64,000 bases of DNA from Chlorokybus atmophyticus. Taxonomy: Eukaryota > Plantae > Mesostigma and Chlorokybus algae. The first letter of the stretch is position 1. Each line of letters starts with the position of its first letter. This document shows positions 3,976 to 62,500 of this stretch, in pieces. The position numbers were made by a program, and so were the translations under genes. The stretch is taken from positions 86,091 through 150,090 of the forward strand of contig RHPI01003009.1 in the NCBI GenBank assembly GCA_009103225.1, read 5' to 3'. The notes beneath the pieces were generated by a model, which was not told the DNA's origin, searched no databases, and worked only from the letters and a program-made list of their open reading frames with translations.

Positions 3976-4816
3976 AAGTGGTTGTATGTAATTTTGGATC
4001 AACACGAGTGCTTCAAGTGGAGGAGGAGAAAGCATCAGAGGCCGTCACCTTTGTACATTACAGGCGTGTGCGTGTACAAAGCTTTGCGTGTGCGTACGTG
4101 TGTAAGTAGGGTTTGAAGGGAACGCTGAATTCATTCATGTTGGACAAGGTGAGGTTGTATTTATCATTGGGGAGAGAAAAGGATTGACAGGCCAGTTACA
4201 TGCTGTGCGTGCGTGCGTGCTTTGCGTGCACGCACAGCTTTGCTTTAAGCAGAAATGGTGGTTTATATCATTCTAGAATGTTGGTTTTAAATCGAGCTGC
4301 TGGCAACTTGATTCTGCGTGCTGAACTGATTGCCCAACATCAACAATTGCAATGCTGCACTACAAGCATAGCATGGAATGACCTTCATTTCATGCAGAGG
4401 ACCATCATTACGGTGCACCATTGTGAATCCCAAGTTGGATTCTCAACACACCGATGTACTTCAAAACGTCAGTCATCATGCTGGGTATCGGGCTAGAAGT
4501 GGCATAACCAGCAATAGCCAAGGCACTTACACAAGCGTTAATTGTATTTGCCGCTGGTTGTAGCGTTGCTCTGGTAAACTCTGTGCAACTTCACACGTAG
4601 CCAGCCACTGCCAAGCTGTATGATGCAAGCCTCAGGCAGTGACAATGTCTCAACAACTGCTTAATCATGTCATGACTCAGCAGCTATTGAACCGCACTGA
4701 GTAGTACCAACACGATCTAGATAGAGGATTCACATTACAGCAACACAACATGTATCCAGCTACCACTACTGACTATTTTGAAGATGCAGAGGGACCATCA
4801 ATGCCCTCTCTCAGCC

Positions 4817-46952: not shown

Positions 46953-47017
46953 GCCGCCACACATGTTCAGGAAGTCGCCAGACATACGCTTTCAGCGAGT
47001 TCCGTCATAGTGCTGCT
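46953..47017 (-). promoter_or_regulatory. SECIS element of SELENOW-like gene A
   Basis: Minus strand ATGA-CGGAACTCGC-TG-AAA-GCGTATGTCTG-GCGACTTCC-TGAA, about 160 nt after the stop: AUGA/GA core, ~10-bp helix II, apical AAA. Confidence 0.82.
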
Positions 47018-47170
47018 TTCGCCTGCGCCGTCGCTTTTGCACAAGTGATTAGCATTAGCTTGGGTGAGGGAATCACAAACCATGGAGCTTTAATCTGGCG
47101 CAATGGCAATGTTGTTGGAACATCAGCTTACCTTCACGACCACCGGCTGATGCCGGCAATGACATTAGCC

Positions 47171-48432
47171 CTACTGATTGGCTGCCTTTATATCAGGCTG
47201 CACCTCCAACAAGACGGCCTTTACAGCATCTTCAATGGCTTGCACCTTGTCATCCGTGTCCACCTGCCACAGACCAGCATAAGACAAAAGCAAACAAAAA
47301 CAAGCTGCCAGCTGAGGACTTGAAGCCCAATGTGAGTCGGCATATGGCTCAACAATCATCGCATCACCACTGACAAATCTTGACACCACAATGGCAAACA
47401 TGCAAGCCACTCACATAGCCTTGGCCGTTCTTCTTGGAGTGGAGCAGCAACCGTGTACCATCTTTCTTGACGACCTCGACCTCTGCAAGCAACAGCCAAG
47501 TGAGCTTGCAGCACAACGGCTAAGCTTATGCACAATGCTAAATTCCAAGTCAGCAACGGCACTGTCCAACTGGAAAAGCGCGCTTTGCTTCATGTGTTCC
47601 ATGCCCTTGAGCCATATGGCACGCATTTATGAGTGCAAAATGAGTGTCTGCTTGAGTCATCTACTCGACTGAAATACACTCTGCACTCACCTAGCCAGCC
47701 GGTTCTGGTTTTTGTTGCCACTCCTGTCTGCAACACACACGCATACAGCTTCAGAACCGAAGCAGCTGGGCGGACGGCATTTACCAGGGAATGCGCAATC
47801 CACAGACACCCAGCCCTCTTACAATGTCGATTCGTCCAGGAAACCTTGCATTGAGGGCACACACAAGAGGACCAACAAGCTTCGCCATGCACATGATCAC
47901 ATGAACGTCAGCATCTGACTTGAACTCACCGCAGCCAATTGAGCGATTATGCCAATTACATGAAGAGCTTACCACGCTGAGTCTTCCTGGGAACCTTGCA
48001 TTGAGGGCACTCTCAATGTGTCGGTAGTGTGAAATGTACCCTGAATAGCAAGCAGATAGGCAAGCTCAGCAGCGTGATATGGTACCCGGCAGGAAGCCAA
48101 ACCAGCAAACAACTCAGACATGGCACAATACCTCATCCCCCGCTGTAGACAGAAGGCAGCCGGATGGAAGAAGCAGGGCACAGAGCAGCATTTAGCATAC
48201 AATGACAGACAGTCAAGTCAGCATAAGAGGCAGCAGCTAAAGATCAAAACAGCCACCCATGAGACATTGAGCAAGCAAGCAAGCAGCAAGCAACAACCAA
48301 GCAAGCCGATGGGCAAAGCAGAAGACCACTCGCCGCAGCCTACCAGTAAGTGACCTCAATCTTGAGGCGCTGGTCCGGCGGCAGCGGGACGGCCGGCGCG
48401 GGCAGGCCGGAAGGAGCTGAAGACTGAGCCAT
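47171..48432 (-). CDS. SELENOW: Selenoprotein W-like (Rdx family, CxxU), gene A, 121 aa
   Basis: Exons 48432-48344, 48142-48132, 48040-47973, 47727-47691, 47482-47415 and 47263-47171 give ...KIEVTYCGGUGYISHYRHIESALNARFPGRL...WLEVEVVKKDGTRLLLHSKKNGQGYVDTDDKVQAIEDAVKA... In-frame TGA at 48133-48135. Confidence 0.92.
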
Positions 48433-50894
48433 GGATGCCTGAAAAGTTTCTCAACCCCTCTCCGGGCGTGCACCTCGCCGCCCTCCGGCCGCCGCAGTCG
48501 CTCAACGGGCTCTTGCTCAAGGCTGTAGCACCGCTGGCAGGCTGGTAGGCAGCGAGCGCTGCTGACTGACACATGGAATCTGCAGTACACGTGTATGATT
48601 ACTGCGGTACCGCTGCCGGTTTGATTCCTGATGATTATTATGAGGCCAATCAAATGGACAGTAGGTAGGCCTACCAGCTAATGCTTGCATAGATTTTGCA
48701 TTGCCACAAGCCTTTTGCTTGAGAATTGAACATGAGACCTGTTTGTATGTGAAGTCCAACATGTTCACATATCAAGGGATGATTATGGTTTATGACTAGT
48801 AACGTTCATAAACCCTACATTGATAAAAGCTCGTGATTTGTCACTAGCTGATTTCGGGTATGTTTTATTGCAACCATTGGTGAAGCTTTGCTTGTTGGAG
48901 TAAATGTTATGTTATTTTGTGGTTCGGTATAATATGCTTTGCTATGTTGTGTTTTTTGAGTGCGTATATCCTGCCGTGCACGCGTTATACAACAATTAGA
49001 GTCATACTATTACGCCGTGTTACGCTAGCTATTATTATACAAAATATGTAATAATGAGTCGTTATTACATACTATGCATACCCTATGTATTGTCACACAA
49101 CCGGGCAAGGGCAATAGCGAAGCTAGCTACTTAGGTTGTATACGCAGCCTGGTGGTGTAACAAGTTGTTGGCTGGCATGTGGGACCGTGCTTGTGCTTGC
49201 ATATGTCACAAAGCCGTGCAATGGTTAGTCACATGCACACCATTGCATGTATTCTACACAAAGTGATGATCACACAAACTTCATGTGCACTTGTGTAAAA
49301 GACCACAGATAGCAAGTGACATTTTGTGCGGAAGCACCTATTTGTGAGACATACCTTATGATATTGTTAAGCACATAATGTTCTACTCGTACTACACTGA
49401 TACCCACAAAAATCGTTTGTATCTATAGGTTAAATGACGACCAAATGCTAGTTTGAGGACATATAAGGGTCCAGGTAGGGGCAAAAGTGAGTGTACGTGC
49501 TTGAAAACTGCGAGGTGAAAAGTTGGATAATCATATGCAAGTAACAACTCCAAGTTTTTATGCTACCACAAACATGCTTATTTAGTTGCCCCGCGTGTTT
49601 CCGCACATTACCCCACAAATGAATGCCTGATAAAAATGCATGCTGCAGGGAAAGTTATCTATCCGCTATCTGCTAGGTCGGTTTTTAAGTGGTATATACA
49701 AGGCAACAAATATCAACATGACGGTTGTGCTCATGCAACATGTTCGTCGCCTGCCAACGGCCAATGATGACCTTATTTGATTGAATGTATTGCAAACCAT
49801 TGCAATACATTCAATCAAATTATCCAACATATAAACATGCCTTACAAAACCATTATGTTATAGTACATGCATTTCATATACACGTACATATGCATAAGAT
49901 GCATGTATTACGTGACTCATATGATCAATGGGATTGCGTGGCTTATATTGTAATGCATCTATCCACATGTTGGCATAGGTATGTATAGTGTGGCTGCTCA
50001 ACCATATACACGCATTGTGCCAAGTTGAATCGGCAAAGGGTCGTACATATCATGTGGTATGTAATCAATACATGTGCACATCATGTTGTACTCTACGAAT
50101 TATAAAATGGTGTTATACTTGAGACCAGAAGGTGGTGCACATGATGTCATGCTATGCCATGTGTTGAATGCATGCCATGATTGTGCTCAAGCATTAGGGG
50201 TGGCCCACTCATACCAAAGCCTTGGTATGCTATGCTGTGCACACACGCCCACACCATCACTACCCGCATCCATAGTGACGCAACATGCTCCACACAACCA
50301 CAGCCATAGCTGCTTGGCAAGCCCATAGCGTCGCCCCACCCTCAACCCCAAGATTACCTGGAGGGAAACGCCACTATCAGCAAGTTGCCATGCATGCGGG
50401 CAACTGCCAACTCCGGCCGGCCAAGCTTTTACATCTAAGTGACTACGCTATATGAAAACCTGTGACTGCAATGCTTTTTTAATGTGTGCTCATTGCTTCA
50501 ATATTTGCGAATCACAACATGTTGAACAATTACACGTGATTGATTACTAGACATGTCAGTTTACAACCACGTCAACATAGGACTAATAAAAGCATGCACA
50601 TGCAACATACATCTACACAATAGCTACAGTCTTTGCCTACAATGGCCTACTAGCAAACACGGCATCTGTTGCAGCAATGCACAAATGGCAATCTAGTTAC
50701 TCAAACAAGTTTGCGCATACGTGCCCGTGCTACACACTTGCACGTCGCACCACTAGGGTTTGATGCGGACTGCCATTGATCTACACAATGCAATCTGTCA
50801 ACAGGTTGAAGCGGTCTTCTTGTCACTTGAGGTACGCAATCTATATACAAAGACTACTAGCGAGCCTGCACGCCAGTAAGCAGCTATGTAGCAG

Positions 50895-50962
50895 TGCCGC
50901 CACACACTGGTCGGGCAATCACCAGACTTGCATCTTTCAGCGACTGCCGTCATGCTTGCTGC
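50895..50962 (-). promoter_or_regulatory. SECIS element (form 2) of SELENOW-like gene B
   Basis: Minus strand ATGA-CGGCAGTCGCTG-AAA-GAT-GCAA-GTC-TGGTGATTGCC-CGAC: long helix II with G-U pairs, AAA and a mini-stem with a GCAA loop. Core is shared with the SECIS of gene A. Confidence 0.88.
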
Positions 50963-51008
50963 TCCTATGCATGCACACACATCCATCTTCACAATATACT
51001 TGAAACCT

Positions 51009-52044
51009 CTATTCGCTTCCACCCGGTGGTGAAGCTGGTGGCTTGATATCACTCTGCTCCTGCAGCAGAGTGGCCTCCACTGCATCCAGCACTCGCTTAC
51101 TCTTTGTGCTTGTGTTGAACTGCAATGAAACATTCTCAGAACGGCTGCGTTAACGCACTTGCATAACCACATTGCCAATCAAACAAGACAAGCTCCCACT
51201 CACATAGCCTTCACCGTTCTTCTTTGAGAAAATCAACTCTCGCGTTCCATCCTTCTTGACTATTTCGACTTCTGCAGCAACATGTCTTACTTACAGACTT
51301 CCCCAACACATCAAAGTTATGTAAATTATGCAAGTCGTCAGTAGACAACTAGGAATGAGACTCTGGCAGTTGCAATGCTGTGCATGAAACCAAGCAAAGC
51401 ACGCCAAATAAACTGCAGAATGCAACACTCACCAAACAAGCTTGTTGTCTTCTGTGTCGGTGTTCCTACCTGAACAACATATGACAGCGCTGGTCAAAGG
51501 TTGCAATAGCAATACCGCATGCCTTCTGCAAAACAACTACCAACTTGGTAAATCATGTCACCAATCAACATCGTTTCATCATGCAGTGCAATACCACTTG
51601 CAGCCGCCCAGGAAACCTCGCATTGAGGGCACTCTCAATGCTTCGGTAGTGGGTGCCGTACACTCCTACACAACAGCAGTGGCTCTGTCAATGCTTGTAG
51701 ACACAACTGCATCTGACATAATCGGTTTGTGAATGGCATGAGTATCCTAGCCTACAGCACAAGAGACACAAGAAACTAAACTGGTACCTCATCCGCCGCT
51801 GCAGGACGAGCAGAAGGTTCAATCCGTGCGCCACATAAGCACAATGCGGCATCAGCAACATGACATGAGATTTGTTCAGGTCTTTCAAGAGCGAAGGTAA
51901 CAACCACACTTACCAGTAAGTAACTTCAATCCGTAGGCGCTCCTCTGGAAGCAAAGGGACAGCCGGTGGCGGGAAAGCGTCGGCAGCAGCGGCAGCTTGC
52001 CGCTGCGACGCCGCACCGCCGTCCGACCCACAGCAGTTGCCCAT
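51009..52044 (-). CDS. SELENOW: Selenoprotein W-like (CxxU), gene B, with N-terminal MGNCC acylation motif
   Basis: Exons 52044-51914, 51798-51788, 51665 or 51662-51595, 51469-51433, 51271-51204 and 51119-51009, with the same phases as gene A. ...RIEVTYCGGU(G)VYGTHYRSIESALNARFPGRL...FEVEIVKKDGTRELIFSKKNGEGY... TGA at 51789-51791. Confidence 0.9.
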
Positions 52045-52719
52045 GCTTGTGTATGCAGGTCACCTCCTCAGCAAGCCATGCCGCTCATGCTGCCCACACC
52101 GCCGCCCCAGGCAAGAGTCTCACCGCCAAGCAAGCTAATGCTGTACTACGCTGTACGACAACAGCACGACAACGTGCTGAAGGGACTTCCAACATGATGG
52201 CACATCTAGTTGTGGAAGTTGTCCTTGTCCAGCTTTGGCGGGAAATGCTTCCTGCTTCCCGCGTTGTATTTATCCGGCGGGGCGCGGTCGCCACGTCAGC
52301 CCGCAGGTCGTGCCCATCCGTTAGGCAGGACGTAACGCCTGCATGTTGGCCAAGCCTCACCCGGCAGCCGCTGCGCTGCGGACAAAGCGGCTGCACTGCA
52401 GCAGTAGCTGCTGCACAGCGGTGGCAAAGCACCTGCAGTATTCGGCTGCTTTGTTCAATTGATTGCTCCATTGCTCTGCTTGCTTGCCAACGGCGACGGT
52501 GGCGGTGGCGGTGGCGGTGGACGTTGTTGAGGAGGTTGTTGTGGTTACCGACAGGGTGTGCGTGAAGCTCGGTGTTTGCAGGGCTGGTTATCATAGGTTG
52601 TTCTGCTAAGTGGTTGGCTTTGTATTGGTGTTGTTCCGTGTGCGGTCGGTGGGTTGTTAAGGTGCACAAAGTGCGGGAAAGGGGAGTTGTTGTGTGCATA
52701 CCGTCGTGGTGCAGGGACA

Positions 52720-55268: not shown

Positions 55269-57810
55269 TCACCTGCCTCTACCTCTGCCTCTGCCCCTGC
55301 CCCTACTGCCAGCACCCTTGCCTTTTCTCTCCTGCAACTTGGCCCGCTTCTTGTTGACAAAAGTCTGCCGCCGATCAGCTCGCGTGCCGACTGGCTCGGG
55401 CCGCGCACGCTTGATCGCAGCCTTGTCCTTGTCAGCGGCATCAAACTCATCGCGCCTACCTGGTGAGGCACCTTGCCGCTGAAAAGGTTTTCGCCACTTG
55501 TGAAGCCCGCGGGTGAAGGAGTCGTCCGGCTCTTCTCCTACCTCCTTTCTGTAGTACTCCGCGTCATCATCATAGTCATCATCATCATCGTTTGCCACAT
55601 CAGCATAGGCGTTCTCCTCTTCGGGCTGTTACACAAGCAAAGGTGTCAATGTGGCATGCTGAGTGTGCTTGTCAACAGCTCATTTGCGTATCTCAACAAA
55701 CCTGTTCCGTGCTCTCGCCACGCTTCCGCTTGCCTTTCTGCTTCAACTCTTCAGCTGCCTTCTTGCGTGTGACATTCTCGTCCTGCTGCTTCTTGCGCTC
55801 TGCCTTGAGCCGAACTTGTTCGTCTTTCCTCTTCTGCAGCTCTGCCACCTCCTCTTCTGACCTTTGAATGTAACCATGGTAGAGGACTTTCCCATCACAC
55901 AGTCCCTCCTCAACCTGCAAAGGTGTACATTGAGGGCAGGCTGCAAGTCTTGAGCATAAACTTGTACACACGAGTGTTGCAACAGCACGTGAACAACGAT
56001 GAATACAACAAACACACCTTTACAAGCTCCAATTCCATGCGCGGGCCAATCTCATGAAGCTTCACAGCGCTGAGCATCCCCGAGCGCCCGGGCTTTGCAC
56101 GCTTGGAAGCTTGAGGTAGAGGCACTTGCGAGGCCTCGTCCTCGACTTCACTATCGGATGCATAACCAGCACGCGTCATGAACTCACTCACGTCCGCCAA
56201 CTCCCCCAGGTTTGGTAATTGCCTCTTCTGCAATGCACACATGCATCATCACATGTGTGGGAAACCCAACTATAGCTTAATGTTGTGAACTACCAGCGTA
56301 GTATAACTGCGCAAGGTACGGTAACGACCACTGTGTGTGCTATCACAGACATAAACACAAAGGCACACGCAGACACAACAGGCACGCACGCTCAAACACA
56401 CCCGTGCCTGTGCAAGCAAAAGTACACTTACGCACAAGACAGCATGGCGTGTACCTGTAACAGGTGGCGGATGGGCTTTGACACGCCAGCAGGTGCCGCC
56501 TCAATGGCGTAGTGTCGAAAAAACACACGGGCAGTAGCAGCATCGTAGTGCAGCAGCGCCACTCGCTGGCACTGCGACAGCTTGATGGTAGCGACGTTCA
56601 AGGCGGGAAACATGTTCTGAAACATGACTGTGCAGAGCTTTAGATGCTCCTCCCCTGTGTTGAAGTTGTTTAACACAACAAGAGGAGAGGTCTTGAATGC
56701 GGAGGCTGGAGCGCGCGGTCTCTTTTGCAATGACACCACATCTCTGCAGCATTGAAGCGGCATTACATCAACGCTCACAGCAAAAACAAACATGAACCTA
56801 CTGCTAGCCGAGTCAAATAAGAACGCGCACCCACATGCTTGCATGCGTGTACGTGTACGTGCGCGCATTGCTGTGGGTGTAGCTTAAGCCTAGGTTACCA
56901 AGAGTTACAAGACATCCTTGTGAAGTGGTTTGCACGCACCTTGCGAGCGAGTAGCCATGAATGCGAAATGTTAACGTTGGTCCTCGTGGCATCTTAGCAA
57001 AGCGAACATATGCGGCGGTGGAGGTTGCGGACAGCATGACGAGGTGTGAGACGCCCAGCGGGCCCGCAACATGCACAAAATCCTTCAGACTGTTGCGCTT
57101 AGACTCGCGCAGTCGTGTGGCTGTATGCGGCATCATCACCTGAGCAAAAATGAGTCAGATGCGCAAGGTGCATGCCACTTGCGCGCCAAACGCGGACCGG
57201 TCTATACGACACTAATCTACATATACACTTGCATATGGAGCAAGACAGTGTGCATGGGTGCTGCTAGCGACCTGAAGCGCACATAATAATGGACACCTGC
57301 TTACCATTACGTTGTGTAATTTTAATGTAACACAACCGTTTTCAAGCACGCAGCTTAGCAGTCTTAGTGGCAGCCATACAAGCTGCTTTCCACGCTGCCC
57401 AGATTACGTGAACAACGTCAAACTGGCGTACAAGCAGTAATAACTGGTACCAGGTATTTCAACAAGTCGCAATTTCGTGGACCAAAAGTCCTTTTGCTCG
57501 CATTGTCGATTGCATGGAAGGAGCCAAGCTACCAACAGCTCAGCAATATGCTATCGCTGACATGTTGTTCCTGGAGCATTGAATTGATGGAAACGTGGCG
57601 CCAATTGTATTGGAAACAACCAACCTGTCTGAGGTTCATTTCCAGTTCCCGCAGCGCTTTGCCAGAGATAGCAGCCCCCTTCCCCCGCCGCATGACAAAG
57701 CTGCGAGGCGGGCCCTTCTCCCCAGTCGTCGCAGAGGTGGGCGCCGCAGCGCCATCCCCCCCAGCACCCGCCTGGTGCGTGCGCTTCTTCTTCCTCCTGG
57801 TCTTCGCCAT
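55269..57810 (-). CDS. PPAN: Peter Pan / Ssf1 Brix-domain ribosome biogenesis protein
   Basis: [99 protein letters not shown]. Confidence 0.95.
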
Positions 57811-59557: not shown

Positions 59558-62500
59558 CGTGTAAACACTTTCGCTCTTGCTTATCTGCGTCAACGGAAGC
59601 TACAAATAGCTACCACATGCAATGGCATCGCATAGTGTCCAGCGCTTGCCATGAAACAGCAAGGACTTGACCGCAGACAGAGATGTGGACAGTGCCCGAC
59701 TGCGTGTGTGCATTTGCAAACAAGATGCCGATGCGCTTAGAATGCCAACATGACTCCAGCCAGGTATGCCCAGCGCATGTGTAGCTCACGCAATGTGCAT
59801 TGGCAAATAATTCTTTAGCAGCTTCTTGCACCCTCGGTTGCAATATGCGGGGTATATCATATTGACTACTTGCATGTGCAACTAAGAGATAGTGGCCGCT
59901 GGTAGGTGTGCAGCAGTTGGTTGGAGCAAAGGCTGTGTATGAGGCGACCATGTTTACTGCGCAATGGATGCGATATGATTGTGCCATAAGAGATTTGGAG
60001 CTAGAAACGTCCGGAGTAAGGTGTGTGGCTGTGCACTGCCCAGTGCAATTTACTTTCAGTGTGCTGAAGGTTGTTTTGCTTGTGTGCTCATTCACTACAG
60101 GTTCAACGTTACATCACATAACTGAGCGCGTTGACCTAGCCATGGCGTGTTGATGGCTTGGTAACAGGAAGGGCTGCACACTCGCAGTGCATACTGCCTA
60201 TACTGGAGTGTAAACTACCTCTGACATGTGTCTTGGACAAACAACACTCAGGAGGGTAAGCCATTAACTGTGCAGCAAGGTTGTGAGTTTGCTCATTACA
60301 CTTGTCTCAACTTTGACCATCTCGGCTGCCTTTGCGTATGTGTGCGCAGGCATGGCGGCCACCATGTCTGCAGGTTCTTGTCAGACACGGGTAATGGCTA
60401 ACTGCTGTTGTGGTAGATATGTGTCTATGTCCGGCACAGTAGCATTACTCCTTTTGTACCACCTGTGTCGAATAGTGTCAACTAACAATTGTGGACACTA
60501 GATAACATTCGGGCGCACATATGGTTATGCCATGTTGGCAGCTGTGACATGTTAAAAACATGGTGACTGCTTGTAATGAACCCTTTTAAGAACTAACTGG
60601 TTCTTTGCTGGCATGGGCATGCGCATGGTTTGGGAACATGGCTGATGCATGTTGAACAGGACAGCTTATAATAAAGGCTGGTAATGTGTCAACAACGCAT
60701 CATTTGCGGCCGGAAGGGCTTGGAACTATTTTAACTATTTTAAGCTTCATCATTTGTGCGGGNNNNNNNNNNNNNNNNNNNNNNNNNNNNNNNNNNNNNN
60801 NNNNNNNNNNNNNNNNNNNNNNNNNNNNNNNNNNNNNNNNNNNNNNNNNNNNNNNNNNNNNNNNNNNNNNNNNNNNNNNNNNNNNNNNNNNNNNNNNNNN
60901 NNNNNNNNNNNNNNNNNNNNNNNNNNNNNNNNNNNNNNNNNNNNNNNNNNNNNNNNNNNNNNNNNNNNNNNNNNNNNNNNNNNNNNNNNNNNNNNNNNNN
61001 NNNNNNNNNNNNNNNNNNNNNNNNNNNNNNNNNNNNNNNNNNNNNNNNNNNNNNNNNNNNNNNNNNNNNNNNNNNNNNNNNNNNNNNNNNNNNNNNNNNN
61101 NNNNNNNNNNNNNNNNNNNNNNNNNNNNNNNNNNNNNNNNNNNNNNNNNNNNNNNNNNNNNNNNNNNNNNNNNNNNNNNNNNNNNNNNNNNNNNNNNNNN
61201 NNNNNNNNNNNNNNNNNNNNNNNNNNNNNNNNNNNNNNNNNNNNNNNNNNNNNNNNNNNGGGGGAGGGGGGGCCTCCATCTAAATGAACACAGTAACACA
61301 GCTGTGGCATAACGACTTCATTTGTATCGACAAGACCTTTAAGCATACGTTTGTACATGGCATACCATGATCTATACCCATACATAAACTCAAGTGCGCA
61401 TGATGATTCAACCACAACCAACAAACATGCGATTTGTATTTAGTGTCACCATTGTTGCATTTTTGAAGGGTACGCAACTTTCAACATGTGATAATGTTAA
61501 TTCACTCAACATAGTTGTGTATATTCAGGCTGTTTGATATGTGTATAGTTGTTAAGCAAGAACAACTTGAATGCATGCGTGCACATGCGCAATCGAGCAT
61601 TAAAAAAACATTTTAAACAATTTTGAATTCAATTAAACATTAAAAGCAGCTTTTGATAGCATAAGATACGAAACTGGTTACACACAATAGTATAACCTCT
61701 CCATTGTAAACCGCCGACCAAGAGATCTTGCCTTGTAAGAGACATTTTTGAGGAAACATATCGTTACCAAATCTTCAAATCTCTTCCATCTAAGAGCAAG
61801 AAACCTCGCAATAGGAAACCTTAACAACATGGATTTTCTCTTACACGGAGGGTGCATTATAAAATTTATTAGTAAGTATGCTTTATGAGAATGATACTTT
61901 CCTGAACATGAGCAAGTGTTATACATATATTTGTGTCACAGCATTACATAGCATCACAAGCTGTAAAATGCGTGATGTGTTTGACGTAACCTCGATATAG
62001 ACTATGCTCTTACATCGAGGAAAGAGACCCTTGTTGTAAGAGACAAAGTGCAGGGAATAAACATGTCTTCTAGATCCATGTCATACTGCATACCATGCAC
62101 ACGCAACGTAACGGCACAAACAAATACACATGCAACTATTACGCTAATGAAAAATGGATCAAGAGGGGAGGCATGCAATTGCGAGATTAAAAAAACAGCA
62201 ATAGCTTAACATGTCCCTATCGCATAGAAGAAGAGAGGACATGAGGAGAGGGATTGGACTGCATTTGCTTATTGCGTATCCTCTGATAAGACATGCAATT
62301 ACCAAATGCAATTTAATGACAAGATTTTTGTGTTACAAATACGACCACATATATCCGTTTAACTATTCTTACAACAACCTGTAAGTTGGGTTATCCGTTT
62401 AACATATCATCTTACATTGCGGACAACGCCTGTTTGATCTGACAGCGTGACAGTTCCATTACACCACTTCACCACTAGCTTTCGTGTTGTGGGCTCCCAA

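Follow-up and report, generated by a model that had tools for sequence, protein, structure and literature searches.

Do two TGA codons in a pair of neighbouring algal genes terminate translation, or are they decoded as selenocysteine (Sec)? The genes, here called A and B, lie head-to-tail on the minus strand (as judged by strand reading and scripted exon location) of a stretch of Chlorokybus atmophyticus DNA 64,000 nucleotides (nts) long (contig RHPI01003009.1, positions 86,091 to 150,090; below, the window, in whose numbering all positions are given). Gene A occupies 46953–48432 and gene B 50899–52044, both on the minus strand and both with six exons, these limits in each case taking in a putative selenocysteine insertion sequence (SECIS). 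Very probably they are tandemly duplicated selenoprotein W (SelW) genes whose UGA would be decoded as Sec via the SECIS in the 3′ untranslated region (3′ UTR). From comparison of sequences we infer that both are transcribed, that the 11-nt exon which carries the Sec codon is used, that Sec is inserted and that the products have a redox function.

In eukaryotic Sec decoding the SECIS core is bound by SBP2, and Sec-tRNA is brought to the UGA by eEFSec. In the mechanism proposed here, the UGA within Y-C-G-G-U, isolated on an exon of 11 nts, would be decoded as Sec in either mRNA, the 3′ UTR SECIS hairpin recruiting SBP2 and eEFSec with its Sec-tRNA. The products would be small CxxU redox proteins of the Rdx/thioredoxin-like fold, with 121 and 141 (or 142) residues. 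The duplication is an old one, after which Sec codon, micro-exon and SECIS were kept in both copies.

Exon structure and the position of the TGA codons

A preliminary description of this DNA had claimed a six-exon pair with the same intron phases and with internal exons of 11, 68, 37 and 68 nts, and also an in-frame TGA within YCGGU in both genes. The TGA is where it was said to be, at codon 33 of gene A and codon 47 of gene B and in each case on the micro-exon. The structural claim stands as well, with the exception that exon 3 of gene B is of either 68 or 71 nts. All ten introns of the pair are of the GT-AG type, and intron phases are identical between the genes. There is one in-frame TGA per gene, and exons 1–3 read ...IEVTY-C-G-G-U-... 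in both. The micro-exon is needed, as in neither A nor B does the frame survive a direct splice from exon 1 to exon 3. The joined translations of the two genes were made by script, and served for frame checks, dN/dS and pairwise alignments only.

The exon sizes of gene A are 89, 11, 68, 37, 68 and 93 nts (121 codons). The coding part of its exon 1 (48344..48432) begins with the ATG at 48432, a start shared with the public model of this gene discussed below, and encodes MAQSS...RLKIEVTY followed by the TG of a Cys codon. Exon 2 is the micro-exon (48132..48142; CGGGGGATGAG), with the Sec codon TGA at 48133–48135. Exon 3, of 68 nts (47973..48040; GYISHYRHIESALNARFPGRLSV), is alignable with SelW relatives in their N-terminal half. 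Exon 4 (47691..47727; 37 nts) is also present in the public model, exon 5 (47415..47482; 68 nts; EVEVVKKDGTRLLLHSKKNGQGY) was located by script, and the coding part of exon 6 (47171..47263) ends with the stop codon TAG at 47171–47173.

The exons of gene B measure 131, 11, 68, 37, 68 and 111 nts (141 codons). Exon 1 (51914..52044) begins with the ATG at 52044 and encodes MGNCCGSDGG...RLRIEVTY, again followed by the TG of a Cys codon, and the micro-exon (51788..51798; CGGCGGATGAG) has its Sec codon TGA at 51789–51791. Exon 4 (51433..51469; 37 nts) and exon 5 (51204..51271; 68 nts; EVEIVKKDGTRELIFSKKNGEGY) were located by script, and the coding part of exon 6 (51009..51119) ends with the stop codon TAG at 51009–51011.

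Exon 3 of gene B (51595..51665) has a tandem acceptor, tAG|gAG at 51667–51663, whose two sites are 3 nts apart and either of which is in frame. With the first (tAG|G) the exon starts at 51665 and has 71 nts; with the second (gAG|T) it starts at 51662 and has 68 nts. The choice makes a one-residue difference directly after Sec, U-G-V-Y for the longer exon and U-V-Y for the shorter. At the nine remaining acceptors of the pair the sequence is cAG throughout. By splice-site rules tAG|G is stronger than gAG|T, and these general rules favour the 71-nt exon and U-G-V-Y-G. The 68-nt exon and U-V-Y-G are favoured by the register with gene A and a SelW relative.

Just 5′ of gene B, 23 nts before its ATG, there is a six-codon upstream open reading frame (ATG AGC GGC ATG GCT TGC TGA; 52068–52088, minus strand). 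It is relevant only if the 5′ UTR extends to 52068–52088.

Conservation on both sides of the TGA

Comparison of the two genes reveals a set of shared islands, on which blastn and an independent repeat finder agree: the 3′ part of exon 1, the micro-exon, exon 3, exon 4 (weakly), exon 5 and the SECIS. The micro-exon island, taken with both of its splice sites, is identical at 18 of 20 nts (90%). Exon 3 retains 18 of its 22 residues, and six of its ten changed codons have synonymous changes only. The sole non-coding island is one of about 75 nts in the 3′ UTR (47008–46937 in A and 50953–50879 in B; 79% identical). The introns are of differing lengths, and global alignments of them score 1.3–3.3 standard deviations above shuffles, which makes them at most weakly alignable.

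Over the whole history since the duplication, dN/dS between A and B is 0.19 (Fisher p 1.5e-6) when taken over the 58 codons past the TGA and 0.20 (Fisher p 4.7e-8) over 84 codons. Judged by this, purifying selection between A and B has acted on what follows the TGA; since sequence past a real stop would not be so kept, the TGA would not be one. The synonymous distance, dS, is about 1.3–1.6, and as synonymous sites are thus close to saturation, the duplication is old.

Gene conversion was considered as a source of the exon similarity and is rejected, because it would have homogenised the introns too, and yet these can be aligned weakly at best; dS, moreover, is about 1.3. Within intron 3 of gene A (47818–47866, minus strand) the 3′ half of exon 3 is partially duplicated, GT donor included, in a fragment that would read ALNARFPGRIDI. 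This fragment is 80% identical to exon 3 of A over 49 nts and 88% identical to exon 3 of B over 34 nts. From an upstream AG it could form a 57-nt in-frame cassette, though 19 codons free of stops are nothing out of the ordinary. The fragment is probably a relic of local duplication, the alternative being an unused alternative exon. Beyond it, there is no third SelW copy in the window.

Identity of the encoded proteins

A stop-free reading frame that holds exon 6 of gene A (47174–47410) has a single database match, the public protein model jgi/Chlat1/6809/Chrsp51S06508 of eukprot (P0001), which carries exons 4–6 of gene A. This model, equal to gene A minus residues 27–56, was the query for the family profiles. 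Its best match among solved structures is 2npb_A, Selenoprotein W, with an E-value of 8.2e-6; the next is 10,000-fold weaker (E 0.1). It matches NCBIfam TIGR02174 (SelT/SelW/SelH) at positions 29–73 of 74 with 26.3 bits (E 6.8e-6; cut-off 34.2) and Pfam PF10262, Rdx, at positions 38–74 with 15.7 bits (cut-off 22.6). Positions 1–28 of TIGR02174, which are absent from the model, correspond to the part encoded by the exons that the model skips. A word search with it brought up a dozen short proteins, two of which are named Selenoprotein W by UniRef.

The closest database relative outside Chlorokybus is in a Logan contig (L001; run SRR15274642). Its read-through translation aligns with that of gene A free of gaps for 83 residues with 54% identity (37% for gene B), and the TGA codons of A, B and this contig fall in one alignment column. 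In scripted alignments with two ENA metagenome proteins (P0011 and P0012), gene A is 46–49% identical over 79–83 aligned columns, starting from or just before CGGU, and gene B 33–35% identical. Both metagenome proteins are above the cut-off on TIGR02174, with 57.8 and 53.4 bits. Over the whole domain the two genes thus run collinear with complete family members, and the profile and structure matches of exons 4–6 place the C-terminal half of protein A in the family. The YCGGU of A and B, with its CxxU directly after the first beta-strand, aligns with YCGAU of the Logan contig and with GGWGY of the metagenome proteins. In gene B, TGWLEV is replaced by TSLFEV. By their closest named and solved relatives, A and B are classed as small single-domain proteins of SelW proper. 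The SelW-type identity put forward earlier is in line with 2npb_A as the top structure for the public model and with the TGA of the Logan contig in the same column.

The W within GGWGY of the two metagenome proteins is at the SelW Sec position. Their gene caller appears to have taken UGA as Trp, and they are probably selenoproteins recorded with W.

The SECIS elements

The SECIS of gene A (46953..47016, minus strand) has its AUGA at 47008, 162 nts behind the stop codon and, in the mRNA, 429 nts behind the UGA. For gene B (50899..50962, minus strand) the AUGA is at 50953, with corresponding distances of 55 and 340 nts. Both elements have AUGA, 12 nts, an unpaired AAA and a helix II of 10–11 bp; the 3′ side of the core is UGA in A and CGA in B. 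Stem-loops with an AUGA/GA core and AAA had been reported for the two 3′ UTRs, and these are upheld in both genes by full-model matches to Rfam SECIS_1 and by covariation in helix II.

In sensitive scans of the 3′ UTRs, the full-model SECIS_1 matches scored 22.7 bits (E 0.051) for A and 20.9 bits (E 0.11) for B, where the E-values refer to 4227 Rfam families and, by our own arithmetic, become about 1e-5 for that family alone. Rfam at gathering thresholds gave nothing in the whole window. When the whole window was scanned sensitively, SECIS_1 appeared among the matches listed only at the gene A element, the others being microsatellite-driven look-alikes of miRNAs.

A descriptor of our own (ATGA, 11–13 nts, AA, a helix II with 9 or all 10 of its pairs formed, and finally N-GA) has three matches in the window where 0.12 per 64 kb are expected from Markov-simulated sequence, and two of the three are the A and B elements. 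Across the SECIS of A, B and the Logan contig helix II is 97% paired, with five of its 11 pairs compensatory, i.e. changed on both sides; in slid controls at most 58% is paired and at most one pair is compensatory. In gene B helix II is fully paired.

The third descriptor match has its ATGA at 4476 on the minus strand (approximately 4420–4480) and is probably due to chance, there being no SECIS_1 match to it even at E 10. It sits behind a minus-strand coding region.

Some results weigh against Sec decoding of this pair. Both SECIS_1 scores are under the Rfam gathering score of 35 bits. Single-sequence energy folding of the two elements is no better than that of shuffles (z 0.14 and −0.32). Exon-by-exon searches of Pfam (8 pieces) and PDB (3 pieces) produced no match, the pieces of 22–30 residues being too short. 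The dN/dS values, which span all the time since the duplication, are compatible with one copy having lost its function recently. As regards folding, the SECIS core is non-Watson-Crick and weak energy folding is usual for SECIS, so z-scores of this kind are expected. As regards the scores, the SECIS of the Logan contig is likewise sub-threshold (26.3 bits), and the Rfam SECIS_1 model appears to under-score the SECIS of this lineage.

The low Rfam scores and the non-significant z-scores are also the points in favour of a quite different explanation, in which translation simply ends at the TGA, the hairpins resemble SECIS by chance, and the genes yield either nothing or peptides 32 and 46 residues long. 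However, it leaves unaccounted for the purifying selection after the TGA, the same TGA column with the same type of SECIS in an unrelated contig, and the presence of descriptor matches 55 and 162 nts behind two stop codons when 0.12 are expected per 64 kb. It is considered extremely improbable.

The public model and a possible Sec-less product

The public model of gene A consists of exactly residues 1–26 and 57–121, without the CGGU part; what it lacks is VTYCGGUGYISHYRHIESALNARFPGRLSV. Its splice runs from a GT inside exon 1 (48355|48354, after ...KIE) to exon 4 and removes 11 + 11 + 68 = 90 nts, namely the tail of exon 1, exon 2 and exon 3, with the frame kept. What is lost is the redox centre, along with the first third of the domain. 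Gene finders cannot place TGA within coding sequence, and that is the reason for the jump from exon 1 to exon 4.

For gene B the word search with the public model of gene A disclosed no public model, though it would have shown one of 50–159 residues with exon 5; gene B is probably without one. An exact look-up in the contig collection returned no record for either the unspliced exon-1 reading frame of gene B or Chrsp51S06508. The prediction that annotation truncates or misses such genes is thus correct for gene A, where Chrsp51S06508 is without residues 27–56, and probably so for gene B, as missed, no Chlat1 model of it having been found.

Could the Sec-less form nevertheless be the real product? 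It would be a 91-residue SelW-like protein without the redox motif, and exons 2 and 3 and the SECIS would be relics. The public model does exist, with its 90-nt skip in frame, and there is a GT at the corresponding place in exon 1 of gene B too. Yet the skipped exons are conserved between A and B while the introns around them are not, exon 3 keeping 18 of 22 residues with synonymous changes only in six of ten changed codons, and the SECIS is both conserved and covarying. In addition, what is skipped corresponds to the N-terminal half of the family profile and aligns with relatives, and gene finders avoid in-frame stops by construction. That the Sec-less protein is what the gene makes is accordingly very unlikely, and Chrsp51S06508 should give way to the 121-residue Sec-containing form, with the second gene added next to it.

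A selenium-scarcity switch between Sec-containing and Sec-less forms might operate through the 90-nt in-frame skip and the isolated 11-nt exon. This is a weaker suggestion than that of a lipid anchor on protein B, which is dealt with in the next section.

The two copies

A further question is whether both copies function. At least one of them could be silent or a young pseudogene, with one functional SelW gene left, and this would be more possible for B. Gene B is the more diverged from other SelW proteins (37% identity to the Logan contig, as against 54% for A, and the change of TGWLEV to TSLFEV), the homologous acceptor of its exon 3 is a weak gAG, and no public model was found for it in the word search. 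Nevertheless, in both copies the frame is open, every intron is still GT-AG (ten in all), the TGA is retained, and AUGA, AAA and GA of the SECIS are intact; helix II of B is fully paired and the divergence between A and B is mostly synonymous. Loss of one copy is on this evidence unlikely, and two Sec-encoding SelW genes are preferred.

The decoding machinery that these genes would need is listed, for Chlorokybus, in Table S2 of a published survey of selenoproteins, which gives for the genome one eEFSec, one PSTK, two SBP2, one SecS and no SPS, and for the transcriptome one SPS (PMC6627142). There are no tRNA genes in the 64-kb window. The last exon junction is a long way downstream of the UGA in both mRNAs, which should therefore, to judge from mammalian selenoprotein mRNAs, be prone to nonsense-mediated decay under selenium shortage.

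Protein B starts with MGNCCG (52027–52044, minus strand), a start that protein A does not have. This start conforms to the pattern for N-myristoylation, G-{EDRKHPFYW}-x(2)-[STAGCN]-{P}, and it has two Cys for palmitoylation, as in plant calcium-dependent kinases. Tentatively, the paralogues may have split by location, protein B (MGNCCGS) being an N-myristoylated and palmitoylated, membrane-tethered SelW and protein A a soluble one. We know of no description of a lipid-anchored SelW.

Comparison with SelW genes elsewhere

Mammalian SELENOW (mouse 2NPB) shares with A and B the CxxU near the N-terminus, the HSKK-G-GYVDT block, a 3′ UTR SECIS and the number of six exons. Exon 1 of mammalian SelW accounts for only 9 residues (PMC3316567), and its first intron is therefore at the CxxU, as in A and B. 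In contrast to the mammalian protein, the algal ones have N-terminal extensions, with 24 (A) and 38 (B) residues before the IEVTY strand, as well as a five-residue insertion relative to 2NPB (KKDGT/R region), and their Sec codon is isolated on an 11-nt exon. While the mammalian SECIS is in a separate sixth exon (PMC3316567), the models of A and B have no 3′ UTR intron.

Among green algae, Chlamydomonas reinhardtii SelW1 and SelW2 also represent algal CxxU SelW and attest to a Sec-containing family there; SelW1 has been seen at the protein level by mass spectrometry (PMC9404770). Chlamydomonas is a chlorophyte rather than a streptophyte, and it is as algal CxxU selenoproteins that its SelW1 and SelW2 are compared with A and B here. 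Zebrafish SelW2a and SelW2b are a tandem pair of SelW-type genes both of which keep Sec (PMC3316567), but they stem from an independent lineage-specific vertebrate duplication and have no acylation-type N-terminus. Selenoprotein V has a SelW core to which an enlarged exon 1 has added a new N-terminal extension (PMC3316567), a parallel to the variability of exon 1 in A and B. It is, however, confined to placental mammals and its exon 1 encodes approximately 230–330 residues, whereas the extensions of A and B are short and B begins with MGNCC.

The SelW of the Logan contig reads ITYCGAUGY, with its TGA in the same column as those of A and B, and has a SECIS laid out as AUGACG...GCUGAAA...UGA about 90 nts behind the stop codon. 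It differs in being a contiguous open reading frame, from an mRNA or an intronless gene, and in having CGAU where A and B have CGGU.

Significance for the Chlorokybus selenoproteome

Chlorokybus belongs to the deepest streptophyte lineage, the one most distant from land plants. To our knowledge, land plants have lost Sec altogether. The survey mentioned above counted, according to its text, only three selenoproteins in the Chlorokybus genome (PMC6627142), and there (Liang et al. 2019) low counts serve as an argument for erosion of the selenoproteome by life out of water. The count of three may be too low. Genes A and B are overlooked members of a known family. SelW selenoproteins, algal SelW, the Sec machinery of streptophyte algae and tandem SelW pairs are already published. 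What is new is the occurrence of two SelW genes in the deepest streptophyte lineage, the confinement of the Sec codon to an exon of 11 nts, the faulty public model of gene A and the way in which gene B starts, with MGNCC. The pair illustrates how a Sec codon on a micro-exon escapes gene finders and also protein-to-genome aligners.

The surrounding window

The spacer between A and B is 2.4 kb long and AT-richer, with a GC content of 0.45. Two inverted repeats in it may be hairpin or MITE-like remnants: one at 49775–49820, whose 21-nt arms match perfectly and are 4 nts apart, and one at 49036–49080, which is of 22 nts and imperfect.

The next gene upstream (55269–57810, minus strand) looks like one for a Brix-domain ribosome-biogenesis protein, going by the translations of its open reading frames (...FKTSPLVVLNNFNTGEEHLKL...). 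Further on, at 60001–62000, GC content falls to as low as 0.315, and open reading frames run in nearly all six frames at 60686–61424, which suggests low-complexity or repeat sequence.

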